Origin: Penicillus capitatus
Taxonomy: Eukaryota > Plantae > Chlorophyta
Direction: 5' to 3'
Length of the DNA stretch: 64,000 nt
Assembly (NCBI GenBank): GCA_965649825.1
Contig: OZ287695.1
Span: 372,001 to 436,000, forward strand
In this document: piece after piece, positions 768 to 47,937 of the stretch
How the letters are laid out: every line of letters starts with the position of its first letter
Position numbering within the stretch: position 1 is the stretch's first letter
Translations under genes and position numbers: made by a program
The notes under the pieces: model-generated
The model's database searches: none
Seen by the model: only the letters and a program-made list of their open reading frames with translations
What the model was told of the DNA's origin: nothing

Positions 768-3700
768 TCATGGCTTCAGCAGATCCTGGAGTTCTGTTTT
801 AGTTTGTTCCGTACACACATCGACGTGTGTACAGATAACGTCGTACGGTTTCTTGCCGTCGTCATTTTCGATTGTCTTGAGTTTCGTTCCCATCGAAGTA
901 TACACTAACGCCTACCGACACAGTTGTTATCGATCACGCCACCGAGTCAAGAACGCGGCTCACCTCGACCGACTCAATTTTTCCAAAGGATGCACCATAG
1001 TGCATCGCTGTGCTTCCCCCATTGTCCTTGGCGTCAACGATTGCACCGCTGTCCAGGAGAGTCTAAGGAAAACATCAATGCGGACTCTCCGAGTGCACGT
1101 CTTACTTCAATGATGTCTTCATTTCCTCGGGTTGTGGCATACATGAGAGGCGTCGTATCGTGTGGCGCCAGCCTATACTCAACATTGGCTCCACGTTTTA
1201 GCAGGAACTACAAAGTTCCACTGGATTAGAGAACGCAGAGGCTGTCACTGACAGACTTTGAGTGCTTTTCTGGAAATCTGATCTATTGCCTCGTAGAGAG
1301 CAGTTTCCCCAGCTCCATCCGGTTGGTCGATTTGCGCTCCGTTATCGAGAAGAAGCTTCGAACAGAGACAGATGGTCAGGGGAGGAGGACTGGCAGCAAC
1401 ACTGGCCTACTTCGACGATGTCCACATTATTGTTTCGTGTTGCTATGTGAAGGGCTGTATCTCCCGTCTGGGTTGGTTTCGTCGGATCGGCGCCGTTTTG
1501 CAGGAGAAACTGCACGTCACGTCTTCAATGACAACGAGTTGGCTCAGCTGTTTGGACTTACCTTCACAATGGCAGAGCTGTCGTCTTTGACGGCAACGTG
1601 AAGCACGTTCATTCCTCTGCGGTTCAAAGCAGATGTGTCCGCTCCTTTGTTGACGAGAACCTTCAAAGCACCCATTCATCAGAAGCATCGAAACAGATAC
1701 CGCCCTGACTTTGACAATCTCTGTGTATTCGTATTTGACTGCTGCATGAAGAGCAGTGTCAGCTGTTCTGTCGGCGATGTTGACATCTGCTCCGGCATCG
1801 ATGAATGCCTGCGGGCGAACAGCCTTCCGATAGGAAACTCAAGATAACAGTACAGGTATTACCTTTACAATCTCCAGATTGTTGTTCTCGACGGCAACGT
1901 GGATTGCTGACTTGTGATCGGCGTCAAAAGTGTCAACGTTGGCGTGGGCTGCAATGAGAATCTTCGAAGAGCAAGTGCATTAGAGCGAATGGCAGCTGAA
2001 GGAGGACTTACTGATACGATCTCTGTTTTTCCTAGTTCAGTTGCGATGAAGAGTGCCGTTTTTGAATCGACAGCTGTGTCCATATTGATATTACTGCTGA
2101 CGAGTGCCTTTAAACAATGATCGTCAGGCAGAAACTGAAAATAGGCTTGTCAGCTATACCTTTGCCATCTCAACGTATCCATTCTCCACTGCGATGTGGA
2201 GCGGGGGCTGCTGCTTGTCGTTTTTGCCAAGATTAGCATCTGCCTTAGCTTGGATGAGCATCTGTGGACAACAACTGTCGGCACACAGGCGATGAAGAAG
2301 TGTCACGCGCCTTCACGATCTCGAGGTTATTCTGTTGCACTGCAATGAGGAGAGGCGTCTTATCATCGACGATAGTATTCACTTCGACACCATTCAAGAT
2401 GAGCAACTGCAAACCAATCGTTGCCGAATCAGTAAGCGGCAATACATATGAAGGTTTACTTTTGTGATATCTGGGTATTTCTTTTCGACTGCCGTGTGGA
2501 GAACGGTCCAACCTGTTTCGCTGGGAATATTAACATCTGCTTTGGCTGCGATGAGTTCCTGCGATCGACGTTTATCAGATCAAGGACTGGAGACATGACA
2601 TGGTCTCACCGTTGCGATCTCTGTGTATCCCGTCTCAACTGCGGCGAAGAGTGCCGTTCTTCCATCGACGATTTCATTCAAATCAACTCCGCGCTCGATC
2701 ATTTTCTGAAACAACACAAAGTCGAGCCAGAAACTCAAACGAAATCTGTCTCACCACTACAAGTCCCTTGGATCCCTTCAGAACGGCGTCGTAGAAGAGC
2801 GATTTTCCCTCACCGGGGACAGTCACATCAGCCCCCTCTTCGACGAGGTACTTCACGAAAACAAAAGCCGTTAAAACATGGATACAGAGACATTGCCGGT
2901 ACTTCTGCAATCACTGTCTGATCTGTTTCACATGCAAGCTGTAGAGGTGTTTTCCCGGCACCAGGAGCGTTGATATCAGCCTTGTTTTTGATGAGAGTCT
3001 ATGCAGCGCTCATGGTGAACAGGTTTGTCTGTTTCTGGCACACCTTTGTTATTCCGACGAACTTTCCCATCACCGCTTCGTGCAGTGCCGTCTTTCCGTT
3101 GTTGGCGGGAATATTCAGATCAGCATTCACATCGATGAGGGCCTGTAGCACAGCACGTCGCGATCGGATTTCTGTGACGGTCAAATTCGGAGTTACTGTT
3201 AGGGATGACGTGATGTTCTTCATCGCGGACACGTAAACAGATGTGCGTCCTTCAGCGTCGACACGGTTTACATCGGCGCCTCCATTTGCAAGAACCTGGA
3301 AACAACATTGATAGTCGAGATCAGAAATCAGGATATCAATCTGCAGCGCCGCTGCACAAGTATTACCCCTATGCTTTTTGTTGCCTCGTGGACGGTGGCC
3401 CAAAACATCAGCGTTGATTTGTCAGCAAGGCCGCCCGTCGTCAACTCTGCTTTGTTGAGAAAAGTATCGGGGTGCAGTTTGTTTTGAAGAAGCTCATCAA
3501 CTGTAGCAGATTTGTCATCTTTGATAGCCGCGATTATCGCCTAGTGTTCAATGAAATTTATATGAGATGAAGAAAGTGGCTCTGGTTTACGATGTAACGA
3601 CCATCAGTTGAACCAAGAGAAGGAGTAGGCTCCGGCGAAGGGGTCTCGACGGGCAACGGTGGTGTCTCGGATTCAATTGGAGGCTCCGGCGAAGGGGTCT

Positions 3701-5244
3701 CGACGGGCAACGGTGGTGTCTCGGATTCAATTGGAGGCTCCGGCGAAGGGGTCTCGACGGGCAGCAGCGGTATCTCGGATTCAATTGGAGGCTCCGGCGA
3801 AGGGGTCTCGACGGGCAGAGGTGGTGTCTTGGAGACAATTGGAGGCTCTGGCGGAGGGGTCTCGACGGGCAGAGGTGGTGTCTTGGAGACAATTGGAGGC
3901 TCTGGCAGAGGGGTCTCGACAGGAGGTGGTGTCGCTGGCGGTTCCTCTTTTTTGGGACATTTCTACAGAGAACAGCGACACATGTAAGGATTTCGCATTC
4001 GAAACAAAATCCTGAGATGTAGCCAAGTTGTAACCCAGAATGGAAATGTGAGATGGCATAGAGCACATGACCTACCTTGCATTTTTCGCAGAGAAATGGA
4101 TCTGACGGGAGGGGTGATGGCTTCTCCTTTATCTTGCACTCGCTTGGTGGAGTCTTGCCAGCCATCGTCTCCAGAATCCAGTCTCTGTAGTACGAGATGC
4201 TCGTCAGAACATTACAATCCCTGTAATAAGGAAGGTAAGGATCATAAGATGTGACACCGACCAACAGATCCTCGCCGGGATATCCCTTGCCGACATCGCA
4301 TGGTCCATCTGCCACCACAACAGGACCTCCGTCCAGACCTTGAAGCACACGAGCACTAAGGTTCAGCTTGGTGTTCTGCCTCACACCTGTTTTATCATTT
4401 TCATCTTTTCCGCAAAAGCAGAGCCAGCCATCTCTGGGGACGTCCCCACTCTGGCTTCGACATCGCCCTTTCCAAGCCGGGTAAAGCGACAGGTAGCTTT
4501 GCGTCCCACAGATGTCCGATCTGCCGCCGCCGATTTCCCATCCAGGCATCAGCATGTCCTTTTCTCCGTAGACCATCCCTCTTCGAAACAGCCTTGGCGT
4601 TTCCAGGTGTGCCGCTTTGTCAAGTTTGAGCATGGCCAGGTCGGAGCCTCTCTTTACGTTCCCCGTCCAGCCACTGTGGATGTAGGCGTCTTTAACGTGG
4701 AATCTCTGTCGCCGAACACAGCGGATTCGACCGCGGCGTCTCGCCTGCGACGACGGCTTACCTTCTTGGAGGACGTCGTGTTGATATGGTAGATCCCGCA
4801 GTACACCGTCGGGTAGCACCCGACTGAACCCTCGTGGTTCGGGTCGACGCAGTGCGCCGCCGTCAGGACCCATCGTTTGTTAACGAGTGTGGCCGTGCAC
4901 TCGTGGTTTCGGCTTCCGGCCAGTCGCAAACTGCATAGGTACGGAAATCTTCCTGGTGAACCTTCAATCCTGTGGCACAGCCCGTTCTCGTCGTCGGTCA
5001 CATCGCCACTCAACGGCGCGGAGATTTTCTCGTCTCCGTTCGAGATGAGCGAAAGGAACCCGTCGCGGCGGCCGAACCCTGGACAAAGCAGCGTTAGGGT
5101 TGACGGCAGGATGCCTTCGACGGCACCTGAACTGGCGAATGTTGGGCTCGGGCCACAGAGCAAAACGCAGAGCAGCAGAATCGAAAACGCATGGTCCTTT
5201 TTCTTGAGACAGCACGGCCCGAACAAACGCACGTGTTCAAGCAT
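768..5244 (-). CDS. Trypsin-ankyrin fusion copy 1: signal peptide, catalytically dead S1A domain, Pro/Glu linker, about 16 ankyrin exons, Cys cap; carries a 1-nt frameshift near 2660
   Basis: ATG 5244 MLEHVRLF...AFSILLLCVLLCGPSPTFA. Motifs WVLTAAHC and DLAMLKLD. Spliced DKT-GLDGGP replaces GDSGGP. Ankyrin exons end in phase-0 GT donors. Last exon ends ICTHVDVCTEQTKTELQDLLKP* (TGA 770-768). One ANK exon is 95 nt versus 96 nt in copy 2. Confidence 0.85.
3627..3935 (-). repeat. 54-bp coding tandem repeat (about 5.7 units) encoding ETPSPEPPIESETPPLPV in the linker of copy 1
   Basis: ggctc(c/t)ggc recurs at 3628, 3682, 3736, 3790, 3844 and 3898 (period 54 = 18 codons). The minus-strand frame between protease and first ankyrin reads as a Pro/Glu/Ser/Thr repeat. 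Confidence 0.9.
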
Positions 5245-5899
5245 GACTGCCTCGAGCAGCAAAACACTCGAATTTGAAAAGCGCCTATCAAGCGATCATT
5301 TGTACTCCGTTTCTATTTTCGCCATTTCAAACTTGAGGACAACGTTCTCTTCTGCCGCAGATTTATGCAGTAACCTTTGCGATGTCGATCGACTGCCAGA
5401 GAATCCCACGTTAAGGCGCTGCATGCATCTTTTTAGCGGGATTGGCAGCATTAGATTCGTGTCGATCCCGTATCTCCGCTCTGCGCTGCAGCTTCGCAAC
5501 CGTCCGAGCTGCTGCTGCGGAGAGTAGCCTGAAGCGATTGACAAGACGTAAGGACCTAACGGAGACACCTTACGTGTCTTTAGTGTAGCCGCATGCACGC
5601 TTGATACCTTGTCGACGCGAATCTTTGGAACGTCTCTACGTGGCTATGGGGCGATGCCGGCGAGCATGATACGGAGAAACCATCTTGGGATGCGCGGGAT
5701 CGACGTTGGAAGCAGAAAACCTGTGTGTCATCATTGACGCGACAGCAACGTACGGCAATCAACCAAAGAGAGCTTGTGGTCAAGACAACACTCCCAGCTA
5801 CAGACACTGTCTGAACACTCGTAGTCGCAGACACCGTCTCTCTACAATAGAAGGCAACGTGGGAGTCGGAGGAGAAGCGTCGTACACGTTTCAGGTTTC

Positions 5900-11289: not shown

Positions 11290-14200
11290 TTACGTTCTCC
11301 CAGGAACGAATGGTTTTATCTTCAAGAGTTCTGCGAGATCATCCCGAACTTTTTTCGCGCATGCCTCTTTCTGGCAGATAACTTTGTAAGGAGTATCTCC
11401 CTTTTTGTTCTCGATTATCTTAATCCTCTTTTCCGGTGCCGCTTTCTCCAGCAGCGTCTATAGAGGTAGTTATGATCAAGCCGAGTGATTGAGATTCGGC
11501 TCACCTTAGCAGCCTTGCGTTGTCCGTGACGAGCGGCATAATGAAGTGCAGTGTTACCGTTGCGGTCAACGGCGTCGACCTCCGCTCCGTGGGCGATGAG
11601 TATCTTAGAAAACAGACATCGATGCAGACAGCGTCTAAAAATTCGGATCGCACTTCAATCATCCTCTCATTTCCTTCTTCGGCGGCCAGCATAAGGGGCC
11701 TCTTTCCAATTCTCTTCATTCCGAACTCGATATCGGCTCCATGTTCCAGCAAGGCCTACATTGTCCCACTGCGCGAGAAACCTCAGCGATTGTTACTGGC
11801 ATACCTCCAGTGCAGGGCCGGAGTTCTGATCTGTTGCAACGCAGAGAGGAGATCGCCCTTTCTCATCGGGCTCGTCAATTTTTGCTCCTTTGTGGAGAAG
11901 TGCCTTCGAACATCGACCGTCAGAAAGGACCAGAAAAACGACACTGGCCTACTTCAATAATATTGACCCTTCCTCTTCGAGCCGCAAGGTGAAGTGCTGT
12001 ATCTTTCGTTTCAGTTCTTAGTTTTGGATCGGCGCCATTTTTGAGGAGAAACTGCACGTCGAATGAGTCTTCGCCTCTGCTTGGATAAACATACCTTTAC
12101 AATCTTACAGTTTTCGGTTTCGACGGCAATGTGCAGCGCGTTCATTCCATATCCATTCCAAGACTTGGTATCTGCTCCTTTCTCAACAAGAACCTTCAAA
12201 GCACTTGTCCGTCAGAAGCATTTGAAACGGATGTCATCCTCACCTCGACAATCTCTGCGAATTCGCCTTTTACGGCTGCGTGCAGAGCAGTGTTATCCGA
12301 TGTGTCGACGATGTTGACATCTGCTCCAGCATCGATGAATATCTGTGGTGGGCAGTCGTCAGATCAGAAACGCAGAATGAGATAGGTGGTACCATAACAA
12401 TATAGGTGAAGTTCTTCTCAGCTGCAAGGTGGAGGGCGGTCTTATGCTCAGCGTCGAATGTGTTGACGTCAGAGTCTGCTGCAATGAGAATCTTCAAATG
12501 TTAGAGGATTAGCCAGAATCACAATTGAAGCAGGATGTACCGATACAATTTTGGCGTTTCCTAGTTCAGTTGCGGTATAGAGTGGCGTCTTTCCATCCAA
12601 AGAGGTCGCATTCACACTTGCGTTACCTTCGATGAGTGCCTACAATCAAGTATCGTAAGCTACAAACTGAGGTTAATTATGTCATCCGCACTATGACAGT
12701 TTCAATATATCCCTTCTCCACTGCGATGTGAAGTGGGGTCTGTTGTTTGTCGTTGATATAGTAATCAACGGCTGCGTGCGCTTGGATAAGCATCTTCGAA
12801 CAATAACCATCAGCACGCAGTCTATGACGAAGTGTCATTTACCGTTGCAATCTCTGTGTGGCCCTCTTCCAAGGCAATAAGAAGAGGCGTTCGCTTGTCA
12901 ACTACAGCATTCACTTTGGCGCCGCTTTCAATAAGCAACTGCAAACCAATGACAGTCGGACCAGAAAGGAGTGATGTGTTCTGGTGCTCACTTTTGTAAT
13001 ATCTGGGTACTTCTTTTCAACTGCGATGTGGAGAACGGTCCAGCCTGTGGCGCTGGGAATATTAACATCGGCATTGGCTGCTATGAGATCCTGTATCGGC
13101 ATCAATTTGGATCAAGGATTCGAAACAAGACAGGGTCTCACCGTTGCGATCTCTGTGTATCCCATCTCAACTGCGGCAAAGAGTGGTGTTTTTCCATCGA
13201 CGATTTCATCCACATCAACGCCGTGCTTGATCATTTTCTTGAACAACAGAAAGTCGAGACAGAAACTCAAACGAAATCTGTCTCACCAATACGAGTGCCC
13301 TGGATCCCTTTAAAACGGCATCGTAGAAGAGTGATCTTCCCTCACCGGCGACAGTCACATTAGCCCCCTCTTCGACGAGGTACTTCGAAGAGACAAAAGC
13401 CGTTTCGGAAAATGGATGCAAACATTGCCGGTACTTCTGCGATCATTGTCTGATTTGTGTCCCATGCAAGCTGCAGAGGTGTTTTCCCGGCACCGGGGGC
13501 ATTGATATCAGCTTTGTTCTCAACGAGAGTCTATGCAGCGCTCATGGTGAACAGGTTTGTCTGTTTCTGGCACACCTTTGTTATTCCGACGAACTTCCCC
13601 ATCACCGCTTCGTGCAGTGCCGTCTTTCCGTTGTTGGCAGGAATATTCAGATCAGCATTCACATCGATGAGAGCCTGTATCGCAACACGTCGAGATCGGA
13701 TATCTGCAGAGGATCGAATTCGGAGTTACTGTCAGGGATGACGTGATGTTCTTCATCGCGGACAGGTAAACAGATGTGCGTCCTTCAGCGTCGACACGGT
13801 TTACATCGGCGCCTCTGTTTGCAAGAACCTGGAAACAACATCGATAATCGAGATCGTGAAGCATGATGTCAATCCGCAGCGCCGCTGCACAAGTATTACC
13901 CCTATGCTTTTTGTTGCCTCGTGGACGGTAGCCCAAAACATCAGCGTTGATTTGTCAGCAAGGCCGCCTGTCGTCAACTCTGTGTTGCTGAGAAGAGTAT
14001 TGGGGTTCAGACTGTTTTGAAGAACCCATAGGACCATGTCAATGTTGTCCTCATTGATTGCCAGTATTATAGTCTAACATCCAATAAGATAAATCGATGG
14101 TGCAGACAGTGACATTTCTCACGTTGTATAGTTTTTTTGGAGGATAAACCGGCCTAGCCGGCAAAACAGGTGATGGCGTCGGCGAAGTCTCAGACGTAGC

Positions 14201-15598
14201 ATCCGACGTTGATGTTTTCTTAGGTGGAGTCTTCTTGTGTGGAGGAGGCGTCTTAGGAGGAGTCTTCTTAGGTGAAGGCGTCGCTGGCGGCTCATACTTT
14301 TCTTTGGGACACTTCTACAGAAAACAACGCGCGTATGAGCATTCGCATCCAAAACAGTATTTTGACAGGTGGTTGAGCCAGCAACCAGGATAGAGATGTG
14401 TGATGTGACAGATAGCACAGGACCTACCTCGCATTTTTCGCAGAGATGTGGATCAGATGGGAGTGGCGGCCACTCTTTCACGTTGCACTTGCTCGGCGGA
14501 GTCTTGCCAGCCATCGTCTTCAGAATCCAGTCCCTGTAGTACGCGACGCTGGTTTGAATCGAACACTCTCCGTATCCCTGAGGCTCGGGATCGAATGACG
14601 TGACGCCGACCACCAGATCCTCGCTGGGAGTCCCCTCTCCAACAGCGCACGGCACATCGGCCAACACAAGGGGACCCCCGTCCAGACCTTAAAGCACACG
14701 AGGATAGAGAGATGGCCGGTTTGGATGTCCCACCCTCCCACCTGTCTTCTGCTCAGCCTCTTCCCCGCAGAAGCAGAGCCAGCCGTTTCCCGGGACTTCC
14801 TTGCCCTTGCCTCGACACTCTCTGCGCGGAGACCGGTGCATCGACAGGTAGCTCTGATATCCGCAGCTGTTCGAACTGCCGTCGCCGATTTCCCATCCAG
14901 GCGTCAGCATGTCCTTCTTTCCCAGAACCATTCCATTCCGAAACAGCCGTGGCGTCTTCAGACGCGCCGCCTTGTCAAGTTTGAGCATGGCCAGATCAGA
15001 GCCTCTGGAGACGTTCCCCGTCCAGCCTCTGTGGATGTAGGCATCTTCGACGTGGAATCTCTGTCGCCCAACGAAGCCAGATCAGCCACAGCGTTTCGTC
15101 CGTGATGGCTCACTTTCTTCTCAGTGGTCGTGTTGACCTGATAGATGCCGCAGTACACAGTCGGGTAGCAGCCGACGGAGTCTTCGAAGTTCGGGTCGAC
15201 GCAGTGCGCCGCCGTCAGGACCCATCGCTCGCCGACGAGTGTGGCTGTGCACTCGTGCTTCCGGGTACCGGCCATTCGCAGACTGCATAGGTACGGAAAT
15301 CTTCCCGGAGAACCTTCAACTCTGTGACACAGCCCGTTCTCGTCGTCGGTCACATCGCCGCGCGACGCCGTCGAGATTTCCCCGTCGCCGTAGGAAACGA
15401 GCGAAACGAATCCGCCTCGACGGCCAAACTCTAGACAGAAGCAGTCTTAGGGTCAACCGGCATGATACCATCGATGGCACCTGAACTGGCGAATGTCGGG
15501 CTGGGCGCACACAGAAACGCGCAAAGAAACAGAATCGCAAACGCGCGACCCTTTTTCTTCGGACGGCAGGACGCGACTGAACGAACATGTTCAAGCAT
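11290..15598 (-). CDS. Trypsin-ankyrin fusion copy 2: signal peptide, dead S1A domain (GLDGGP), Lys/Pro/Thr linker, ankyrin array, Cys cap
   Basis: ATG 15598 MLEHVRSVASCRPKKKGRAFAILFLCAFLCAPSPTFA. WVLTAAHC. Spliced EQKT-GLDGGP. The ANK exons checked are in frame. Ends VICQKEACAKKVRDDLAELLKIKPFVPGRT* (TAA 11292-11290). Confidence 0.88.
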
Positions 15599-16109
15599 GA
15601 CTGCCTCGAGCAGCAAAACACTTGAATCTGAAAAACCCATGTCAAGTGTTCTTTTGTAGTCCGTTTAATTTTGGTTCTAAGCTAGCAACATTTTGCCGCA
15701 TGTTCATGTAGTACACACACTCCTGCGTGATGATTTATCGTCGCAGAATCCCACGTGAACTCCCAGCGTTAGCGTGCTTACCCCGATGGCAGCATCGGAT
15801 TCGTTCCGCTGGCGTATTTGCGCGCGATGCTGCATCTTTTGCAACCGTATTCCGCGAGATGGTGCGTCGTCGTGAAGATAATGATGCTCTAAATTGTACG
15901 AGTGTTCCTACTGAAATGACAGATCGTTTTTTGACTAGCTTTTTCTTTCGTCGACTCGTCTTTTGGATTTGAAATAAGATCTTCCTTAGTCTTTTGTCTT
16001 AAAATCGCGATTCTGATCACAAAACCATGCGCCGCCACATCGTTTTCGACTGTCGGCGATTCTCTTGTGCTCAGATCTGGCAAATTGTATGACGCCCACG
16101 ACGTAAGGC

Positions 16110-17010
16110 TATGCAGACGTACCGTCCACTGTCGGACAACAAGCTGAAGCTGGTATCGTTTGGTTGAGAGGTGGTCGTGTTCGCCACATCGGATGTTGCA
16201 GGAGATGATCCACGCGCTGCAGGAGGACGACCCTATCAAGGCGGACAGTCTACTGCTGACAGGCGTCAGCGCCAACAGTCGATACAGCAGCTACACTGTT
16301 GGGCGTTAGTATGCGAATCACCGTAAGCAACCACCGCGACTATTTCACACTCAATTACCATTCAAGCTCCTCTGAACCATGGAGAGCGATGGTTTAATGC
16401 CCTCGTCGCAACTTCCCCATAACGATGGGGATATGGTTGCTGAACTCACACAAGTTCGCAGCTGTTAGAACTTAAGGTTAGGAAACCTTAACTTCCTTGG
16501 GTATTTAAAGACGGCGAATCTCTCTTAAGTAATCTCGAATTCTTGTGCTAAGTCTAAGTGCGTCTTCATCTTCGTCGTCCGCGAGCGTAGCGACTCAAAG
16601 TTATTCAAGAAGTTTACACGATTCCTGACATACAGCACTCTACACATGTTGCCAGGATCAACTCTGCTTCCTTTGGCAACTGCGTACGATTCTATTCAGT
16701 GCGCGAGGGTGAGTGTCTCCGTCCGAAAGAACAGACATCTGCGGAAAGGCGGCTACTGAGCTGCCGGTGCCTGTTGTCGAAGATTCTGCTGCTGGCGAGG
16801 ACAGAGCTTGATGGGTTGAATGATGACGGGGGAACATCTCTACACGGCGGCATCGTTCGGATCGAGCAAAAGTGACAAAGGTGAGGAAGGGTGGACACAC
16901 ATGCCCATACTCTTAGCGTTTTCTCTCCGTTCCGCCTCCTATGTCGGAGCAGGACATTCGTCGCTCCCTACCTACAACTGATCGACTCAAGCAGGGCTTG
17001 GTCATTGAAC
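16110..17010 (+). pseudogene. Relic of a plus-strand trypsin-ankyrin gene (linker end plus first two ankyrin exons)
   Basis: Colinear with 51440-51995 (agacgtaccgtccactgtcggac...gcaggagatg...gaccctatcaaggcggacagtctactgctg). Interrupted by the insertion at 16297-16630 and cut off by unrelated sequence at about 17010. Confidence 0.85.
16297..16630. mobile_element. Probable solo LTR (334 nt)
   Basis: Insertion absent from the paralogue at about 51620. Starts TGTT and ends TGACA (TG..CA). Flanked by tacac / tacag, a 5-nt target-site duplication with one mismatch. Confidence 0.55.
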
Positions 17011-17039
17011 GATTTATTATCTGCTTACTACCGTGTTCT

Positions 17040-18962: not shown

Positions 18963-21900
18963 TCATGGAGTCAGCAGTTTGATAAGGTCCCTCCGAGTCT
19001 TTTCGGAACAATGAGCATCCGGATTAGAACAAACGTATGCGAGAGGAGTTTTTCCTTTGTCGGTCAAGCTCAACCTCGATGCTCCAGCACCAACGAGGAT
19101 CTAGATAGAGTCACCTGCTAGGCAGCGAGGCATTCCGGCTTACTTCAGCAACGTTCAGATGACCGCTATATGATGCCAGATGAAGAGGTGTCCAAGCGGC
19201 ACTTGTCTTGGCGTCCAAATCGGCGCCAGCTGCGATCAGCACCTGCGACCGTCCATCATAGAGCTGATCGATCGCTGCAGAGACCGGACCTTTGCGATGT
19301 CGGTGTAACCGTATTGTAATGTCGTATGCAAGGGAGTGTGACCGGTGTTCGACGAGGCATTCACATCGGCACCGGCTGCGATCAGCACCTGCGACCGTCC
19401 ATCATAAAAGCTGATCAATTGCTGCAAGGACCGTGACCTTTGCGATGTCGATGTGACCGTATGCTGATGCCATGTTCAAGGGAGTGTGACCCTTGTCTAT
19501 CTTGGCGTTCACATCGGCGCCGGCTGCGATCAGCACCTGCGACCGTCCATCATAGAAGCTGATCAATCGATGCAGAGACCGGACCTTTGCGATGTCGATG
19601 TGACCGTATTGTGATGTCGCATGCAAGGGAGTCCAGCCAGTGTTCGACGTGGCGTTCACATCGGCACCGGCTGAGATCAGCACCTGCGACCGTCCATCAT
19701 AGAGCTGATCGATCGCTGCAGAGACCGGGACCTTTGCGATGTCGATGTGACCGTATTGTGATGTCGCATGCAAGGGAGTCCAGCCAGTGTTCGACGTGGC
19801 GTTCACCTTGGAACCGGCTTCAATCAGCACCTGCGACCGTCCATCGTAGAGCTGATCGATCGCTGCAGAGACCGGACCTTCGCGATGTCGGTGTAACCGT
19901 ATTGTGATGTCGTATGCAAGGGAGTGTGACCGGTGTTCGACGGGGTGTTCACATCGGCACCGGCTGCGATCAGCACCTGCGACCGTCCATCATAAAAGCT
20001 GATCAATTGCTGCAAGGACCGTGACCTTTGCGATGTCGATGTGACCGTATGCTGATGCCATGTTCAAGGGAGTGTGACCCTTGTCTATCTTGGCGTTCAC
20101 ATCGGCGCCGGCTGCGATCAGCACCTGCGACCGTCCATCATAGAAGCTGATCAATCGATGCAGAGACCGGACCTTTGCGATGTCGGTGTAACCGTATTGT
20201 GATGTCGTATGCAAGGGAGTCCAGCCAGTGTTCGACGTGGCGTTTACATCGGCACCGGCTGCGATCAGCACCTGCGACCGTCCATCATAGAAGCTGATCG
20301 ATTGCTGCAAGGACCGGGACCTTTGCGATGTCGATGTGACCGTATGCTGATGCCATGTGCAAGGGGGTCGAGCCAATGTTCGTCCTGGCATCCACATCGG
20401 CGCCGGCTTCGATTAACACCTACAGTATCTCTTCGACAAGAACAGATTATCGGTCTTATCGCTCACTTTGACAACTTCGAGATGTCCTTGGCGCGATGCT
20501 ATATAGAGAGAAGACCAGCTTTCTTTGTTGGTGGCACTAATGTCAGCTCCAGCTGCGATAAGAACCTTCTCCATTCCTTTCCAGCGACATAAAATGCTCT
20601 TTGGGGACGCACTTTGACGACTTCTGAGTGTCCGTGGTAGGATGCAATGTGGAGCGGAGTATCTCCTTTGACGTTCTTGATGTCGGTGTCCGCTTTGTAC
20701 TTCAACAACACCTGAAAGCACAGACAGACAGCTGGATGGATTGCATGCAAGCACAGCGTTCTGGACATCTTCTGATGCACTGATTTGTTCATTGCACCTC
20801 TGCGCATTTTGATGCGTCGAATGCTGCAGCCAAGTGCAGCGATGTCGATCCCTCTAGCATCTCATATTCCGGTGTGCTCATATCATGACCGTAGGTCGTG
20901 TCGACATCCAAACCGGCTAAAAGAAGCGCTTCTGCATCGAGTGCACTGTCCCCTCGAATGGCGACGACCATCTTCTGCAAAGACAAGATGCATTCGAACT
21001 CTCGTAAGCTAATGAGCTTACGGTGAGCATCTCTGAGTGAGTCATCTTGGCGTGATGTGTGCGTTTTTCGTCGAATCTCTTCGCCCCTCGCTTCTTGCGA
21101 CTTCGACGCTGCATGCACTCCGTATTCAGCAGTCCATAGATGTGTTTGCTTCAGATCACACCTTTTTCGTGCGATCGCTGCCGGTGATGCTTTCTATCCA
21201 GTCCAGAAAGTGGTCGACAGATGTGTAAACGGCTGGTTCTAAGCCGGAGCACTGTTGGGACTCGTCGTCCGCGTAGCCGTACGACGTGATGCCAACGATC
21301 ATGTCTCTTTTTGCATTCCCAGCAGCGATCTTGTCGTTCGGAGCGTCCACCAACATCAGAGGACCGCCGGAGTCGCCTAGCAGACAATCGCAACGACTCA
21401 CCCTCGGATCAGTTAAAGTCCATTGCCAGGGCACTGACCTTGACATGTGTCCTGTAAAAGCGCTCCGGCGCAGATCCAGCTGTCCTCGTCGACTCCTTGA
21501 GGTTGCTCTTTGCATGATTTACGCGCGACAACGGCAATTCTGTCAGCCAAGCGCAAAACGTGTGAGTGATCCGCGGATTCTGTACGTCCCCATCCTGTTG
21601 CAGCCAACAGCTTTCCGCGCCTCAGTGGAACGTCCCCCGAGCCCAAACGCGGCAGTGTAAGGTTGGCCGCCTCTCTGTCGAGCTTCAGCACTGCAATGTC
21701 AGATCCGTTGATGACATCGCCTGTCCAGTCGTTATGGATATGGCCATCAATGACATCGAACACCTGCATGTCACACGGCGTTCGTTCGACCTGATTGAAG
21801 AGAAGTGTAGAATCAAATCACTCACTTTGTCCTCGTCCACCTTGTCCTTCAGGTCATAGATTCCGCAGTAGACGACGGGGGACATACCCAGGGTTTTTTC

Positions 21901-22318
21901 TCCTTCGGGGTCCACGCAGTGAGCCGCCGTCAAAATCCATTGCGGCTTGATAAGCGTCGCCCCGCAGGCATGCGAATGGCTTCCGCGTTCACGCATGCTG
22001 CACATGTACGGAAATCTTCCACGCTTCGCTTTTGCGCCTCCCTGTAGCACACGGCTCAGATAATGACGGTTGAGATGCTTCCGCGTCGATAGACGCACCA
22101 CTATCTTCGCGTAGATGTCGTTGGACGCCTCGCGCCATCCTTGTCCTAGAAACGCGTCAAATGGACGGATAATGGGAACTACGCTCACCCGTTTCCTGGC
22201 TGCCGTGAGTTGGCCACGACAGCAGGAGTAGCCACAAGTGTATTGCTAGGTGCGTCATTTCTGCCGCCTTTCTTTCCGGGCGTCGACGTCCCTTTTCTGA
22301 ACAACGGTGCTCGAGCAT
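18963..22318 (-). CDS. Trypsin-ankyrin fusion, predicted active protease, about 12 ankyrin exons plus Cys cap
   Basis: MLEHRC...MTHLAIHLWLLLLSWPTHGS signal. Spliced AK-IVGG activation site. WILTAAHC, DIAVLKLD, spliced QDTCQ-GDSGGP. Ends YVCSNPDAHCSEKTRRDLIKLLTP* (TGA 18965-18963). Alternative start at 22258. Confidence 0.9.
19234..20420 (-). repeat. Tandem exon+intron units of about 147 bp (99-nt ankyrin exon plus about 48-nt intron) with a 588-bp higher-order duplication
   Basis: gatcagcacctgcgaccgtccatc (or a close variant) recurs at 19234, 19380, 19528, 19675, 19822, 19968, 20116 and 20263. Units at 19380/19968 and 19528/20116 are near-identical, introns included (offset 588). Confidence 0.92.
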
Positions 22319-22400
22319 TGTGTTTGCTGGGAAATGAAGCTTCGCGAACGATGCAGAACAATGGTCGCAAGACGCACCATTACGTACGTACATACATACT

Positions 22401-23395
22401 TTGGAAGTACGGGTCGTTCGAGTCAAATGCAGCACGAGCAACACCCGAGTCGTCAGTGCAAAGCTGCTCGACGGCGACGTCGTTGGTCTGCCCTTTCTCC
22501 GTTCCCGTGGATTCACTTACACACCGAGCCAGTACGTCTTCATCCGCTGCCCTCAGATTTCCCGATTCGAGTGGTACCCGTTCTCGCCGATGTCAAGTCC
22601 CGGAGACTGCTATCTCGGCGTCCACGTGCGCAAGGCTGGCGACTGGACGGCGGCGTTGCATCAACTGGTGGAGGAACACGCTCGCAGGAGGACTGGATCC
22701 TGTTCGGAGAACAGCGGGACGTTCTCTGTGTGCTCGAGATACCACGTCAAGCCTGTGCTCGACGAGTTCAACGTCGTCAAGCGATTCAATTTCAGCATCT
22801 CTGTGGATGGGCTTATCGGCGCCCCGCGCAGAACTATGCTCCCGATTGCAAGGTCATTGTGCTCATCGGCGCCGGAATCGGCGTCGCTCCTTTCGCATCG
22901 GTCCTCACCGATCTGCTCGATTCGCTCAAACAGTGCGCCTGTCCGAAGTGCGGCTACAGCAATCCGCACCTGATGCGCACCCGTATCAAGAAGGTCTACT
23001 TCTACTGGACAGTGCGATCGCGATCCGAAGCATCCTGGTTCAAGCATCTCCTGGAGGCCATCTCGTTGCGCGATGAAGACAGTCTGCTGGACATCCACGT
23101 GAACATCACTGGTATCAAGCGCGCCGATGACCCCAGGACGATGATGCTGCGCCTCGCGCAGTACGAAAGCGGCGAGCCTTCGACATCGGACGCCCATTCC
23201 CGCACCGTCACGCGCTTTGGCCGCATAGACTGGAACGAAGTTTTTGAGAAGGTCAAAGTCGACTTCCCGTGCGAACCGAGTGTGGGAGTTTTCTACTGTG
23301 GTCCCAATACAATCGCAAAGATCCTCGACAAAATGTGCCGACAGAACAGCAGAGGGCCGACAAAATTTCTGTTCATGAAAGAGTCGTTTGGGTAG
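22401..23395 (+). pseudogene. RBOH: 5'-truncated, frameshifted NADPH oxidase (RBOH/NOX) FAD- and NADPH-binding fragment
   Basis: FTYTPSQYVFIRCPQISRFEWYPFS..SSPGD..LGVHVRKAGDWT, then a frameshift at about 22827 into AQNY..VIVLIGAGIGVAPFAS...KKVYFYW...GVFYCGP...KESFG*. No transmembrane heme domain upstream. No introns. Confidence 0.88.
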
Positions 23396-24520: not shown

Positions 24521-25785
24521 GATTAGATCATCTGCAGAACCTTGAAAATGATCAAAGTTACAGACCCTGCTTGCGTTTGCAAATTGAAGCTAACATCGAA
24601 GCAATTGTTGGTAGAAAGAGTCGGGTGAGTGATAAAAATAGGGATCCTTTTAACATCCTCCAAGAATATCCGTCTCCTGTTCGTCGTCCCCTTTGATCTT
24701 AATCGTTCCTGTATGGCCTCTGAAAATGAAGGAGGTTGTCCAATATATCCAATCAAGAGGCGCAAGTTGATTCGATTAAGCGATTGAGAAGCTGATCCAA
24801 TCTCTCCAAGTCAAATGCGCTTGTAATGTCTGCATTTAGTTAAAGAACATGGTCGACGCTACGAAGTGGAGTAGAGATTACACGAGAAAGCCGGCAATGC
24901 CACCTTCGTGCTTTGCTACATTGTAGGAGAAGATTGTTGTCCCAACTTCAGTTATCGCGATTTCTTCAAACTTTTGCACTCTTGATTGTTCATTCCAAAC
25001 ATGTTGTGTCCGAAGTAATAAGCATATCTGTTGTTTTAACGATTAATACGCTTTGACAAACCAGGTTTGGAGCTGTTCCATCTTTGAAATTTGTTATCGA
25101 AGTCTCTTGTGAAAGCTTACCGTGCAGAACAGCTTCGTCTGCAGCTCGGAGGACCTTACTAGATGAAGAGTTTTACTTGATTGCCCACGGGTTGTAACTT
25201 ATACAGGTTGTAACGAGTAGTGCATGACATGTGCTGGGACATAGACCACACGGAGAGGTGAATGAATAACATATTGCCGTCATTAATCGATCAAGCATGC
25301 CGGGGATTATGTCCGGGAAACTCTTAAAACGCCTTGCATTCGCGCGATGACTTTGCCGCAGTTCGCCGGCGAACCTTTTTGTCATCGACCGACAAAGCGA
25401 CAAAGCCATTCTAAAGTTTGTATGAAAGCGAGTTTCTTTTGGAGCAAGATAGGTTGAGAAAAGATGAGCTCAATACAAGACTGGAGAAAGTAGGATTGAT
25501 GGGTGCGAAGTATTCATTGCACACCAGTTACGGTTCTGTGTAGATCGTACAAGTCGACTGTTGATTGAAAATGGACCGCTAGCGTTGCAGACAACATTAT
25601 CGCAGCAACAAACGTTATAGATGACAGATCCGATCCTGCAGCAAACGACGCACAGTTACCGAAGACAAAGTCGGCGAAAACAGACAGCTAATTCAGAAAT
25701 CACAAGTTAGACGCAAAGACACACTTTTGATAAAGAAGCAAGCTCTTTTGTCACAACGGGCTTTACGCTTAGGTAGGTGTGGCAT
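24521..25785 (-). mobile_element. Decayed LINE (non-LTR) copy A
   Basis: Minus frames: EEIAITEVGTTIF, LNADITSAFDLERLDQLLNRL (LD..KAFD), GSADDLTCF (ADD). Shares sequence with 48160-48885, 59620-59900 and 60830-60920. Shares the end cttaggtaggtgtg with 48885. Confidence 0.75.
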
Positions 25786-30900: not shown

Positions 30901-33504
30901 ATCAGGACGTAGAAATGCGGATGGTGTGTCTAACGCACCTTTAGGGCATCGGTTTGTCCATTCGCTGCTGCGAGGTGCAGGGATGTCTGTCCATCGCCAT
31001 CGAGAGCATTGATCCTCGCCCCTTTATCGATGAGCACCTGCAGGTGCCGCCTTGAGCACACGATTCTCAGAGCAGCGACGGTCTCACTCTCATCGTCTCT
31101 GTGTGTCCGTTTGCTGCGGCAACGTGAAGTGGCGTCTGATAACGAGCGTTGTTGCCGTCGATCGGTGCCCCCACACGAACGAGCTCCTTCAAAGTCACAT
31201 CATCCGTTTGTGAGATCTGCGAGATGATCATCTGTCCTACGCTTGTCATGTGCGTCTGTCCACTTTCAACAGCAATGTGCAAAGCCATCTGTCCGGCAGC
31301 GTTCAGGGCATCGATCACCGCGCCAGCGTCGATGAGTTTCTGCAGGAAAGCGCCGTTCGTTGATGACATCAAAGAGACATGGGCGCGACCAGTGCGATTT
31401 CGACGTTGCTCTTTTCCACCGCGATATGCAGCGGCATGTTTCCGCCACTCGCTGCGTTGACATCAGCTTCGTTGTCGATCAGCACCTGCAGGCATGTGTA
31501 CGGAACACAGAATTTGCCAAGGCCTCTTGGATATACCTTGGCTATTTCGTCGAACTCTTTCTGCACTGCCGCAAACAGTGGCGTCGATCCGTCGTTGCTG
31601 GCAATGTCTAGGTTCGCACGGAAACGGATGAGAACCTGCGAAAGGGCGTGTTGCCTGAAGAGAGGAACAGACGTCATTCATTCTGAGTTACTTTGGCGGC
31701 GTCGATTCCATTCGTCGCCGCAGCGATGTACAGACTTGTGTGTCCACTGGAGTCGGCAGCATCGACATCAGCACCGTTCTCCAGAAGAATCTAGACGCAA
31801 TACAGCGAGGGCAAGGAATGAGCAGGTCGGCGGAAGATGGCTGGACTGTTGTCGGTGTTACCTGCATGATCTTCAGCGCTTTGCTGATAACGGCGTAGTG
31901 AAGCAGCGTCGCGCCAGAGGCGAGATTGGCACTTGATGCCGTCTCTCTGTGGTGGAGCTCGACGTCGGCGCTCAAGCCCTGTTCTAAGACCAAGAGGGCG
32001 GTGTCAGGATCATGGTCCCTGATGGCAACGATCATTTTCTGAGGGGCAGCGAAAGAACTTGGAGATGGCATAGCGCTGGTGTTTGCGTACATTGTACTTT
32101 GACTCTGGCGATGGAGGCGGGGGAGATGGGGAAGGAGCCGGCTGTTGCGATGTCGAAGGAACTTCCGAGGGGAAAGAAGGTTTCTTCTTTGTTGTCTTTG
32201 TCTTCTTCTCACACGTCTAGAGTAACAGACATGCATACAGTCGACATTGGCCATCGAAAACGCGTAGAGTCCTGGCAGGTGGTTGAGCCAGCAACCAGGA
32301 TAGAGATGTGAGATGGTGGATAGCACAGGACCCACCTCGCATTTTTCGCAGAGATGTGGATCAGATGGGAGCGGCAGCCACTCTTTCACGTTGCACTTGC
32401 TCGGCGGAGTCTTGCCAGCCATCGTCTTCAGAATCCAATCCCTGTAGTACGCGACGCTGGTTTGAATCGAACACTCTCCGTATCCCTGAGGCTCGGGATC
32501 GAATGACGTGACGCCGACCACCAGATCCTCGCTGGGAGTCCCCTCTCCAACAGCGCACGGCACATCGGCCAACACAAGGGGACCCCCGTCCAGACCTTAG
32601 AGCACACGAGCGCTGAGGTTCAGCTGGGCGTCCCACCCTCCCACCTGTCTTCTGCTTAGCCTCTTCCCCGCAGAAACAGAGCCAGCCGTTTCCGGGGACT
32701 TCCTTGCCCTTGCCTCGACACTCTCTGCGCGGAGACCGGTGCATCGACAGGTAGCTCTGATATCCGCAGCTGTTCGAACTGCCGTCGCCGATTTCCCATC
32801 CAGGCGTCAGCATGTCCTTCTTTCCCAGAACCATTCCATTCCGAAACAGCCGTGGCGTCTTCAGACGCGCCGCCTTGTCAAGTTTGAGCATGGCCAGATC
32901 AGAGCCTCTGGAGACGTTCCCCGTCCAGCCTCTGTGGATGTAGGCATCTTCGACGTGGAATCTCTGTCGCCCAACGAGGCCGAATCAGCGACAGCGTTTC
33001 GTCCGTGATGGCTCACTTTCTTCTCAGTGGTCGTGTTGACCTGATAGATGCCGCAGTACACAGTCGGGTAGCAGCCGACGGAGCCTTCGAAGTTCGGGTC
33101 GACGCAGTGCGCCGCCGTCAGGACCCATCGCTCGCCCACGAGTGCGGCTGTGCACTCGTGCTTCCGGGTACCGGCCATTCGCAGACTGCATAGGTACGGA
33201 AATCTTCCCGGAGAACCTTCAACTCTGTGACACAGCCCGTTCTCGCCGTCGGTCACATCGCCGCGCGACGCCGTCGAGATTTCCCCGTCGCCGTAGGAAA
33301 CGAGCGAAACGAATCCGCCTCGACGGCCAAACTCTAGACAGAAGCAGTCTTAGGGTCAACCGGCATGATACCATCGATGGCACCTGAACTGGCGAATGTC
33401 GGGCTAGGCGAATACAGCAACGCGCAAAGCAATAGAATCGCAAACGCGCGACTACTTTTCTTGAGACGGCACATTCTACTTGAAAAAACGTATGATGCAA
33501 ACAT
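27999..33504 (-). CDS. Trypsin-ankyrin fusion copy 3: dead S1A domain (GLDGGP) with the longest ankyrin array (about two dozen exons)
   Basis: ATG 33504 MFASYVFSSRMCRLKKSSRAFAILLLCALLYSPSPTFA. WVLTAAHC. Spliced KQKT-GLDGGP. Linker SQQPAPSPSPPPPSPE. Ankyrin exons from about 32.0 to 28.2 kb. Ends IVCTAAERNRKCTRVAAKEIKRYLKNEFPTHKMT* (TAA 28001-27999). Confidence 0.87.
29700..31350 (-). repeat. Alternating A/B ankyrin exon array in copy 3
   Basis: Exons alternate between a ..ID/NALDGDGQTALHLAAANG.. type and a GAPID/N..NA.GQTALHVAA..GH type, at about 150-nt spacing (about 300-nt dimer period). Confidence 0.8.
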
Positions 33505-33869
33505 GACTGACTGCCTCGAACGACTAAACACACTAATCTGAAAGACGCATGCAGACCAACGATTTGGTCGCTCCTTTCTATTTTGGTCCTGAAGGCTTCG
33601 AAGCTTCTCTGCTGCGAATTCAAACACGACGCCATCTTGTCGATTGTTGGCTGCCATAGAATTCATACGTCAATAGCCAGCGTAAGCACTTCACCGCGAC
33701 GGCGGTATCGGACACGTGCTGATAACGTATCCTCGCACTCGTCTGTCACGAGATACTGTATCGTCGCCAACATATCGATGTTCTAAACTGTACGACTGTT
33801 CCCACTCAGGTAGCAGATCGTTTCATCGACGGACTGCGCCTTTCTGGCTTGTCTTTTCGGCTGGAGTGG

Positions 33870-34030
33870 CATGTTCCTTAGTCCTCTGTCTGAAAATCGT
33901 GATGCTGAGCAGAAGACCATCCGCCGCCTCGTTGTCTCCGATAGGCAGCGTTTCATCCTCTTGTGCTGAGACCTGGAAAATCGTGTGACGCCCACGACAG
34001 ACGGTTATGCAGACGCAAATGTCGTACGAC
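33870..34030 (+). pseudogene. Relic of the linker of a plus-strand trypsin-ankyrin gene
   Basis: Similar to 15985-16125. Translates SAASLSPIGSV, resembling SSLPSIGSV in the 50-kb gene (about 51360). Confidence 0.45.
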
Positions 34031-36234: not shown

Positions 36235-37692
36235 CTACACCACACGTGCATCGTTGGCAGGCGTGGAGGTCGTTGGCTTACGTGGCGGCTCGAAGACGTC
36301 TTCGAACGCCGCCGGCAGTTTCTCCGCCATCAAGAGCATCGTCCGAGTGGCATTGGTCACCCGACCCACGCTGGCCCGCAACGGAAACTTTGTGCAGTGA
36401 TCGCCGAAGGGATTGTCCAAAAGGGTGTGCATATTCAGAAGTCCTTGGTACGTCACATTCGCCATGGTCATCAGTACATAGCACCAGAAAATCATCCAGA
36501 CGCTCGTCTGGATATCGTCATCTGACTTCTTCGCCGCGCCAGCTCCGCCGCCAAAGAGCTCACCCAGTCGACCCGTGTGCAAAAAACTGCCAAACCAGGT
36601 GGCCAGTACCATGAGATAGACGTGGACAACGAAAGAGACGAGATGGACATAGGGATACGGCATCTGGGAGTTGATGGTATTGATGATGGAGGTGCCAGCC
36701 TCGACGATGCCGTTGATCTTGTTCAGCAGCAGGGGCAGCATCTGCGGAGCGGCGACGAGCCATTCTGCCGCCTTGCATCGGTTCACGAGAGACTGCGTCC
36801 AGTAGTATACCATCTCAAAGGCGGCCATACCATCGTTCTCGGCATCGTTAAGCAGCTCCCATTCATCTCGATTCATCAACCCCTCGCTGACCATGTTGTC
36901 AAACGTGAGGAGATTACGCGGTTTTTGCAGGGCCTTGGCGTAAACGGGCGAACCGGACTGTACGGAGAAGGTCGTGTTGAGGCCCTGATTGCGGATTCTG
37001 TGGAAGGACGATTTCATGGAGTCGACGAGCGATCGCAGACCATACGCCTTCTTATACCCTTCATTCTGCGCATCCGCCTTGGCAAGCACAAGCAGATGGC
37101 CCAAATTGAGCAGACGTGTGATTTCGGTCCGGGCGCGTTGGACACGGAGGTCTTCGGCGTTCTGCGGATTCTTGATCGTGTTGGCCACTATCATGCAGAG
37201 ATCCGTCGTCGTGCCCATGAGCTTCGCATAGGCCGCACGGATACTCCACCAGCGATTGACGACGAGGGTGATGAAGAGACCGAGGGTGAAGATGACGAGC
37301 ATGCCACAGTTGAAGATGCCGCCAATGTAGGGCGTGCCAAACATGGTGACCAATGTCGCAAGGTCGTCGTCGCGGACACCGAGTCCCGTGATGTGAATCG
37401 CCGCCATCCACAGTAACAAGGCATAGTTCTGTACGTGGAGATAGATGTCGGCGAAGACGGTCGCCTTCCAGTTGCGCATAACGGCCATCGGAATCCATCC
37501 GTAGTAATGCAAGTGTCCGGGGCGGTACTTCAGAACGCGGTCGGGGTGATGCTGCCAGAGGATGTCGCGCTTGGGCATGGCATGGGTGGTGACGCGCTTC
37601 TGCTCGACGGTCTTGCGCGTCTGGCTGCGGAAATGAAAATCCTCGCGACGGCGATGCGTGCTGTCTTGCACATTATCGAACGGCGACGCCAT
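36235..37692 (-). CDS. Bestrophin-family anion channel (intronless)
   Basis: LVIFTLGLFITLVVNRWW, MPYPYVHLV and LLDNPFGD motifs, with several hydrophobic helices. ATG at 37692 preferred; an in-frame upstream ATG exists at 37842. Confidence 0.88.
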   Translation of the reverse strand: MASPFDNVQDSTHRRREDFHFRSQTRKTVEQKRVTTHAMPKRDILWQHHPDRVLKYRPGHLHYYGWIPMAVMRNWKATVFADIYLHVQNYALLLWMAAIHITGLGVRDDDLATLVTMFGTPYIGGIFNCGMLVIFTLGLFITLVVNRWWSIRAAYAKLMGTTTDLCMIVANTIKNPQNAEDLRVQRARTEITRLLNLGHLLVLAKADAQNEGYKKAYGLRSLVDSMKSSFHRIRNQGLNTTFSVQSGSPVYAKALQKPRNLLTFDNMVSEGLMNRDEWELLNDAENDGMAAFEMVYYWTQSLVNRCKAAEWLVAAPQMLPLLLNKINGIVEAGTSIINTINSQMPYPYVHLVSFVVHVYLMVLATWFGSFLHTGRLGELFGGGAGAAKKSDDDIQTSVWMIFWCYVLMTMANVTYQGLLNMHTLLDNPFGDHCTKFPLRASVGRVTNATRTMLLMAEKLPAAFEDVFEPPRKPTTSTPANDARVV

Positions 37693-37840
37693 GGTGCCGC
37701 GCTCGGGGACGTCGAATGGCAACGAACAAGGCGGGTGGTAAAGATGCGTCTCGGCAAAGATGCGTTCGTTATGTGATGATGATGACAATGTCCGAAGTAC
37801 ATGCGTCAACGGTGGTGCGTGGGTGGGTGTATTGATAGCC
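37693..37840. promoter_or_regulatory. Short divergent intergenic region, bestrophin / kinesin
   Basis: 148 nt between the head-to-head start codons at 37692(-) and 37841(+). Confidence 0.55.
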
Positions 37841-47697: not shown

Positions 47698-47937
47698 CTG
47701 CCTACGTTGCGCCTGCTGTTTGCTGCCTACGTTGCGCCTGCTGTTTCCTGCCTACGTTGCGCCTGCTGTTTGCTGCCTACGTTGCGCCTGCTGTTTCCTG
47801 CCTACGTTGCGCCTGCTGTTTCCTGCCTACGTTGCGCCTGCTGTTTGCTGCCTACGTTGCGCCTGCTGTTTGCTGCCTACGTTGCGCCTGCTGTTTGCTG
47901 CCTACGTTGCGCCTGCTGTTTGCTGCCTACGTTGCGC
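47698..47937. repeat. 25-bp minisatellite, about 9.6 units (ctgcctacgttgcgcctgctgttt[g/c])
   Basis: cctacgttgc recurs every 25 nt from 47701. Only the last base of the unit varies. No spacers. Confidence 0.95.

Follow-up and report, generated by a model that had tools for sequence, protein, structure and literature searches.

A domain-sized tract shared by two trypsin-ankyrin genes of Penicillus capitatus points to recent interlocus gene conversion

How does a gene come to share one domain almost letter for letter with one paralog, when the sequence beside that domain resembles another? This question is raised by a gene in a 64-kb stretch of Penicillus capitatus DNA (assembly GCA_965649825.1, contig OZ287695.1, positions 372,001 to 436,000). 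We refer to the whole stretch as the window, and all coordinates count from its first letter. Using tblastn with the domain of copy 3 as query, we identified at least 8 trypsin-domain genes in the window, each adjoining ankyrin-repeat coding sequence. The question concerns three of them, copy 1 (c1), copy 2 (c2) and copy 3 (c3). We found that c2 is a mosaic, and we put at roughly 80% the probability that it is a gene of one type (type A) whose trypsin-like domain was recently overwritten by ectopic (interlocus) gene conversion, most likely from c3, a gene of another type (type B).

The models of the three genes are predictions, built by hand from the GT/GC-AG splice consensus and frame continuity. 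All three lie on the minus strand. The coding sequence of c2 (15598-11290) has 23 exons and encodes 1041 aa with about 17 ankyrin repeats. That of c1 (5244-768) has 23 exons in the same exon-intron plan and encodes 1093 aa, and that of c3 (33504-27999) has 31 exons and encodes 1286 aa with about 25 ankyrin repeats. We found no internal stop in any of the models, and the reading frames of all three are intact. The proteins have a common plan: a signal-peptide-like start (a basic stretch, a hydrophobic core and PSPTFA/SS), a trypsin domain, a Pro-rich linker, and 17-25 ankyrin repeats. Judging from this start, the proteins may be secreted. In c2, the trypsin domain covers aa 78-306 (Pfam PF00089, E=9e-21), the linker between it and the ankyrins is Pro/Lys-rich, and the ankyrin repeats match the Pfam families Ank_2 (E=6e-98) and Ank (E=4e-91). 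The linker is wholly different among the three copies. Genes c1 and c2 are of type A and c3 is of type B; between the types, only the trypsin-like domain can be aligned, and the linkers and ankyrin arrays are unalignable.

The c2-c3 tract and the mosaic around it

Self-blastn of the window aligned 14363-16119 with 32273-34015 at 85.9% identity over 1783 nt. In 60-nt sliding windows, the identity between c2 and c3 rises sharply inside this alignment and falls on both sides: it is 0.93-1.00 from about 15534 to about 14460 of c2, except at 14757-14700 (0.72), and 0.38-0.65 beyond either end. We thus delimited a tract of about 1.1-1.2 kb in c2 (15549-14366, minus strand; near-perfect core 15502-14426) and its match in c3, the probable donor (33452-32276, minus strand; core 33405-32334), which lies 17.9 kb from c2 in the same orientation. 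An earlier note on this DNA, made from the letters alone, had described 14365-15540 as almost identical to 32275-33440. Our best breakpoints fall within 10 bp of its limits in c2, and the identity over exons 2-4 is 98.9%.

The tract takes in the 3' part of c2 exon 1, all of introns 1-3 and exons 2-4, and ~60 nt at the start of intron 4. Its 5' end is located in the signal-peptide codons of exon 1, and its 3' end in intron 4, between the trypsin domain and the linker. It covers essentially the mature protease-like domain, as the earlier note had proposed in speaking of a gene-conversion or recombination tract over the protease domain. By part, c2 and c3 are identical at 80% in exon 1, 100% in intron 1, 98.7% in exon 2, 92.5% in intron 2, 99.1% in exon 3, 68.5% in intron 3, 98.8% in exon 4, 74% in intron 4, and at most 55% from exon 5 onward. 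The introns, reported to be largely included, are so for introns 1 and 2, while intron 3 is included in part only. The exons of the tract differ at 10 dispersed positions, 5 synonymous and 5 nonsynonymous (5 amino-acid differences), and identical blocks reach 283 nt at most. Over the same exons, c1 differs by 18-24%. Since the exon divergence in the tract is about 1.1%, against about 25% between this organism and the related one introduced below, the c2-c3 event was recent.

We examined the clustering of shared sites with our own implementation of a GENECONV-type permutation and a maximum chi-square, rather than with GENECONV or RDP themselves. The alignment of c1, c2, and c3 contains 424 variable columns, and c2 equals c3 in 279 of them (279/424). 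The longest run of c2=c3 sites is 63; in 20,000 permutations it averaged 12.8 and never exceeded 33 (p<5e-5). The best breakpoint pair is 15549/14366 of c2, with a maximum chi-square of 179.

Comparison loci L002-L009 were taken from one related organism (assembly ERZ26696514), in which a bestrophin gene 92% identical to that of the window is followed by the same trypsin-ankyrin family in synteny. We found c3 to be collinear with the loci L003b, L004b, and L005 over 6.4 kb, from the upstream region to the 3' end, at 74.6%. For the ankyrins of c1 and c2, the only alignments are those with L002, L003a, L004a, L006, and L009a. This pairing indicates that types A and B are older than the divergence of the two organisms.

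Bootstrapped trees change along c2. In the tract, where we used our own neighbor-joining (NJ) code, the clade (c2,c3) has 100% bootstrap. In the proximal ankyrin exons 6-8, it is (c1,c2) that has 100%, and in the distal ankyrin exons 17-22, it is (c2,L006), again at 100%, with c1 nearest to L002. In the 3' flank, (c1,c2) returns with 100%. The ankyrin part of c2 never groups with c3. The trees of the tract and of the ankyrin part, which the earlier note had suggested comparing, are thus incongruent, and a tree or an orthology call would mislead if it were based on one segment alone.

Outside the tract, c2 resembles other relatives. Upstream, the 5'UTR and start region (MLEHVR...; 15560-15700, minus strand) is closest to c1 5210-5345. 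As the earlier note stated, the 5' end matches c1: identity at 15654-15594 is 0.83-0.88 to c1, compared to 0.53-0.65 to c3. The MLEHVR start is common to c1, c2, and the proteins P0001, P0003, and P0006 of the related organism, whereas c3 starts MFASY.../MCRLKK. Farther upstream, at 16120-15870, c2 is c3-like at 0.67-0.81 and unlike c1. This similarity is old, and the statement that the flanks of the tract differ from c3 is correct for the near flanks only.

Self-blastn aligned c1 with c2 in two segments (3928-5312 with 14277-15666, and 1177-3491 with 11725-14024) at about 77%. Downstream of the c2-c3 tract we found an older exchange tract: 14073-12992 of c2 corresponds to 3540-2460 of c1 (both minus strand) and contains exons 6-12, the first seven ankyrin exons. 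Identity here is 83-100%, the introns being as similar as the exons (intron 8 100%, intron 10 92%), and about 96% in the core at 13570-14020. The match of the ankyrin part with c1, claimed earlier for the part as a whole, stops at about 12990. The distal ankyrin exons 13-23 (12991-11290, minus strand) are 47-81% identical to c1, and exons 17-22 are closer to L006 (73.9%) than to c1 (66.3%); these exons are the L006-like backbone of c2 itself. Beyond the gene, the 3' flank (11163-10609, minus strand) is 89.5% identical to c1 52-606 by blastn, with 89-98% in 60-nt windows. The downstream protein identity between c1 and c2 is 61.5%. That between c2 and c3 is 31% in the ankyrin part, where blastn gave no alignment, so the ankyrins of c3 are indeed unrelated in detail.

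Taken together, divergence along c2 is 1% for the tract, 4-15% for the parts that resemble c1, and 25-35% for the rest. c2 is a mosaic of at least four histories, with an L006-like backbone, a c3-type domain, and exchanges with c1 in the first ankyrin exons and in the 3' flank. It holds separate exchange tracts of different ages, the protease part with c3 and the proximal ankyrins and 3' flank with c1. Independent swapping as a designed property of the modules, however, has no support here: homology-dependent repair would yield module-sized limits in any case.

Adjacent type-A and type-B genes of the related organism, which were assembled independently, show the same mosaic style. L003a and L003b are 98-100% identical far upstream, 57-66% in the start region, 86-97% in the domain, and less than 55% beyond. 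In that organism, the bestrophin gene is followed downstream by a tandem array in which the two types alternate. The type-B copies at L003 9450-15520, L004 9450-15520, and L005 900-6730 match one another at about 100% in the 1.5 kb compared, and each aligns to c3 equally well along 6.4 kb. Either they were duplicated in tandem very recently, or they are haplotigs.

Mechanism, direction and competing explanations

In the event that we propose, a DNA break in c2 would have been repaired by copying c3. Conversion would have reached only as far as c2 and c3 were alike enough to pair. At the 5' edge of the tract, the identity between types A and B drops from 80-90% to about 65% inside exon 1. The 3' edge lies in intron 4, beyond which the linker and ankyrins have no homology between the types. 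Because the tract ends where this homology ends, its domain-sized extent needs no selective explanation, and the modular look of the exchange has the same cause. The product would be an intact chimera of a type-B domain with c2's own linker and 17 ankyrin repeats. c2 is thereby a clean, well-delimited example of how ectopic conversion may make a chimeric multidomain gene.

Two patches interrupt the tract. In intron 3, a 35-nt patch of c2 (14726-14692, minus strand) is not c3-like, with 12 mismatches and a 5-nt indel in 54 nt. In this patch, c3 is similar to c1, and c2 has some states in common with copies from the related organism. Conversion may have left it out, as an island, or a secondary micro-exchange may have followed. 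In intron 2, 4 differences between c2 and c3 are clustered within 13 nt (15087-15075, minus strand). At two of the four, c2 agrees with c1 and the type-A copies, whereas c3 agrees with L003b. Patchy heteroduplex correction at the time of repair, or small events afterwards, could have left these islands.

The direction of copying was assessed with the related organism. In sign tests, more sites place the tract with the type-B copy L003b, the full-length counterpart of c3, than with c1 (137:78, p=7e-5), and the tract is likewise closer to L003b than to L002 (107:60), L006 (122:59), and, marginally, L003a (71:48, p=0.04). After its homogenised neighbour L003a, the nearest relatives of L003b in the tract are c2 and c3 (p-distance 0.166-0.169). 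Counts of sites diagnostic for type A or B were used only qualitatively, as they are biased: type B is represented by one lineage, whose private changes count as A-like. These results suggest that c3 was the donor and c2 the recipient, which we hold to be likely, if with less confidence than the exchange itself.

Several points weigh against this account. The three gene models are predictions from splice consensus and open frames. The intron 3 patch, where c3 is like c1, requires an extra event whichever the direction. At the contig level, paralogs may have cross-talked during assembly or polishing, and a third donor may lie elsewhere in the genome (64 kb of the 613-kb contig was examined). 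On direction, the NJ bootstrap for joining (c2,c3) with L003b is 50-61%, and the distance from the c1 domain to each of the other copies is about the same. In quartets, 37 sites join c3 with c1 (against L003b with L003a) and 21 join c3 with L003b (against c1 with L003a). We read this conflict as concerted evolution within each genome, which makes the quartets incapable of fixing the direction.

The same figures lend some weight to the opposite event, in which a native c2 domain overwrote that of c3. With its type-B placement at 50-61%, the tract falls instead into a group (c1,c2,c3) in 37-46% of bootstrap replicates, and with L003a representing type A, more sites favour (tract,c1) than (tract,L003b). 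The distance from c1 to the tract (0.22) is also no larger than that from c1 to c2 in the ankyrin part. We nevertheless consider this direction unlikely. The tract resembles L003b significantly more than it does any type-A copy. At two differences in intron 2, moreover, c2 keeps the state found in c1 and type A and c3 has the L003b state, as expected for an incompletely repaired recipient.

A further possibility is that a third paralog outside the window gave the tract to both genes, or that c2 is a hybrid from unequal crossing-over. The family is large and clearly recombinogenic, and the window covers 64 kb of a 613-kb contig. We judge both improbable: collinearity between c3 and its type-B counterpart continues through the tract with no visible step, and one crossover cannot place c1-like sequence to either side of a c3-like core. 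On the latter ground, and because the c2 segments are of very different ages (1%, 4-15%, and 25-35%), we rejected a single unequal crossover.

The near-identity could also be false, if an assembler or polisher had collapsed or cross-corrected c2 and c3. The contig comes from a 28x metagenome assembly (ERZ25074695, ctg340412_28x_l; 613,634 bp), and exact look-ups of c2 open reading frames across both junctions matched no second record. Such an error is nonetheless very improbable. The two tracts differ at 10 dispersed exon positions and two intron patches, with no identical block above 283 nt; a path switch would have required two exact returns to the c2 path; c2 is continuous on both flanks and in frame; and the same type of mosaic was found in the independent assembly of the related organism. 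Near-identical 1-kb patches of this kind are a stress test for metagenome assemblies.

That there was no exchange, and that the domain is merely slow-evolving under strong purifying selection, has next to no chance and was rejected as the sole cause: the domain exons are the best conserved part of the family, but c1 differs by 18-24% over them, constraint cannot explain introns and synonymous sites as identical as replacement sites (intron 1 at 100%), half of the few exon differences are nonsynonymous, and the step in identity is abrupt and lies partly in non-coding sequence.

Interlocus gene conversion is known from tandem multigene families such as plant NLR/R-gene clusters, the major histocompatibility complex, and globin or opsin duplicates. 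The c2-c3 event resembles these cases in its ~1 kb of near-identity between non-allelic neighbours of the same orientation with old, divergent flanks, and likewise in the incongruent trees along c2, the patchy tract, and the recurrent exchange that yields mosaic paralogs. It differs in that c2 and c3 share one domain only, which forces the tract to the size of that domain. On this reading, the event is standard interlocus gene conversion, ordinary for a recombining cluster; it is the family itself that looks undescribed.

A trypsin-like domain without its catalytic serine, and its ankyrin array

A search of PDB sequences (phmmer) aligned the trypsin-like domain with plasma kallikrein (E=2e-11), and the catalytic positions were fixed by this kind of alignment to solved S1 proteases. 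His57 is kept (LTAAHC aligned with LTAAHC), as is Asp102 (SDLAMLKL aligned with HDIALIKL). Ser195 is replaced by Asp: c2 has GLDGGP where plasma kallikrein has GDSGGP. The G-L-D-G-G-P codons of c2 are located at 14671-14687 (minus strand), and the Asp codon GAC, at the position of the catalytic serine, at 14680-14682. We found GLDGGP in c1, c2, c3, L002, L003a, and L006, and GLEGGP in L003b. The distant paralogs of the window keep GDSGGP or GDSGSP (21195-21377, 51073-51171, 57721-57927, and 62863-63042). Within the family members examined, GLDGGP/GLEGGP occurs only in the clade of c1, c2, and c3 and its relatives in the related organism. Since the distant paralogs keep the serine motif, this clade is a derived subfamily without the catalytic serine. 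With Ser195 in GDSGGP replaced, its domain does not fit an active S1 protease, and it probably lacks protease activity.

Azurocidin/heparin-binding protein, haptoglobin, and, in insects, the clip-domain serine protease homologues are S1 homologues that lack catalytic activity. The PDB matches of our search include heparin-binding protein. Like these proteins, c1, c2, and c3 have the trypsin fold (by Pfam and the PDB search) and keep His57 and Asp102 with Ser195 replaced, and their clade derives from active paralogs that are still present in the same cluster. Unlike them, they have Asp (Glu in L003b) at position 195, Leu at 194, and a long C-terminal ankyrin array.

The earlier note had called the protease part an effector module and the ankyrins a recognition module. 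We found no support for these labels. Ser195 is replaced, nothing points to a recognition role of the ankyrins, and Pfam found only trypsin and ankyrin families in full-length c2, with no NB-ARC/NACHT or other STAND NTPase core. In this the family is unlike the NLR/R-gene clusters, as it has neither NB-ARC/NACHT nor another immune-receptor core.

The closest named relatives of the GDSGGP-type (active) paralog are BSKO_02569 of Bryopsis sp. KO-2023 and a 'Peptidase S1 domain-containing protein' of Ostreobium quekettii, at 37-38% identity. These Bryopsidales S1 peptidases resemble the GDSGGP paralog as green-algal secreted-type trypsins, but unlike the genes of the window, they are 339-413 aa long and consist of a trypsin domain only, without ankyrin repeats. 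For the subclade of c1, c2, and c3, the database search found no named relatives above about 30% identity. No relatives of the trypsin-like domain turned up when JGI metagenome contigs were scanned, and searches of the literature yielded no account of trypsin-ankyrin genes as a green-algal family. Within the limits of the databases searched, the family looks lineage-specific and undescribed, and it has been found in two metagenome-assembled organisms so far. It adds a green-algal family in which trypsin-like domains are fused to one-repeat-per-exon ankyrin arrays, with one subclade lacking the catalytic serine.

In the ankyrin part, each repeat is encoded by one exon of 96-102 nt followed by a phase-0 intron of 43-56 nt, which gives the DNA a period of about 150 nt. 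The membrane-binding domain of human ankyrin-1 is likewise encoded by many 99-bp exons with one repeat per exon. The likeness extends to one 33-residue repeat per 99-nt exon with symmetric phase-0 introns. The difference is that the introns here are 43-56 nt long and that the ~150-nt DNA period itself forms tandem arrays, as at 19209-20421. Because each repeat has its own exon and the introns on both sides are in phase 0, an array can gain, lose, or exchange whole repeats and stay in frame.

The array at 19209-20421 consists of 8.2 units of 147 nt with 84% matches, some unit pairs reaching 93%. Its unit is one ankyrin exon with its intron, and it lies inside the ankyrin part of the gene whose trypsin part is at 22020-21195 (minus strand). 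This array is a very recent amplification of whole exon+intron units. We also observed that a stretch matching about 7 ankyrin exons of c2 (13616-12541) is absent from the type-A copies L002, L003, and L006 and present in L004a. Repeat number thus varies by whole exon+intron units.

The combination of a lineage-specific family of putatively secreted pseudo-protease/ankyrin proteins, one repeat per exon, symmetric ~50-nt introns, tandem exon+intron amplification, and frequent ectopic conversion might be read as a diversity-generating system, maintained because shuffling binding modules is useful. Its logic would be analogous to that of NLR clusters or variable surface-protein families, and it could serve the responses of a siphonous-type green alga to, for example, microbes, self/non-self, or wounding. 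We regard this idea as speculative and rather doubtful.

Other observations on the gene family and the window

Exon 5 of c1 contains a 54-nt tandem repeat (3627-3920; 5.4 copies, 94% matches) that encodes a Pro-rich unit of 18 residues, PPLPVETPSPEPPIESET. Neither the PKKTPP-type linker of c2 nor the linker of c3 (KKTKTTKKK / PSPSPPPP) is related to this repeat, and the two have no relation to each other.

The genes in the window carry many GT-AG introns of 43-119 nt. Two predicted introns have a GC instead of a GT donor: c1 intron 13 (2311/2310) and c3 intron 17 (30180/30179). Their donor sequences are GCGCGT and GCGAGA, and they could be GC-AG introns or recently damaged donors. Reading through c3 intron 17 leads to a stop codon.

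The trypsin-like parts of the three genes (4076-5244, 14428-15598, and 32336-33504) have a G+C content of 56-59%. The ankyrin parts of c1 (768-3540) and c2 (11290-14073) have 48%, and that of c3 has 55%. The higher G+C of the trypsin-like part could come from GC-biased conversion in an often-exchanged domain.

The further trypsin-ankyrin genes, found by tblastn with the copy-3 domain, are located at 22020-18700 (minus strand), 50427-53751 (plus), about 55442 (minus), 58531-57000 (minus), and from 62239 onward (plus). Among them lie a ferric-reductase NAD-binding-domain gene (22307-23395, plus), a single-exon bestrophin-like channel gene (36235-37944, minus), a kinesin gene (38134-40082, plus), and a gamma-carbonic-anhydrase-like gene (43835-44762, minus). 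Rfam and tRNA scans of the window gave no matches. The bestrophin and gamma-carbonic-anhydrase genes are also syntenic with the trypsin-ankyrin family in the related organism (L008/L009). The best named relatives of the bestrophin are from Bryopsis sp. KO-2023 (48-52%) and Ostreobium quekettii (50%). The active trypsin paralog leads to the same two genera. These moderate identities suggest that the organism is a green alga nearest to Bryopsidales among named relatives.

A 25-nt tandem repeat is present at 47693-47937 (9.8 copies, 97% matches), where the sequence is intergenic or has no gene assigned to it. Finally, dispersed segments of 78-88% identity connect the surroundings of various family members within the window: 16115-16296 with 51442-51622, 16631-17030 with 51618-52025, 24640-24909 with 59635-59904, 25309-25781 with 48424-48885, and 54992-56470 with 58077-59549. 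These segments suggest more duplications or exchanges, or shared repeats.

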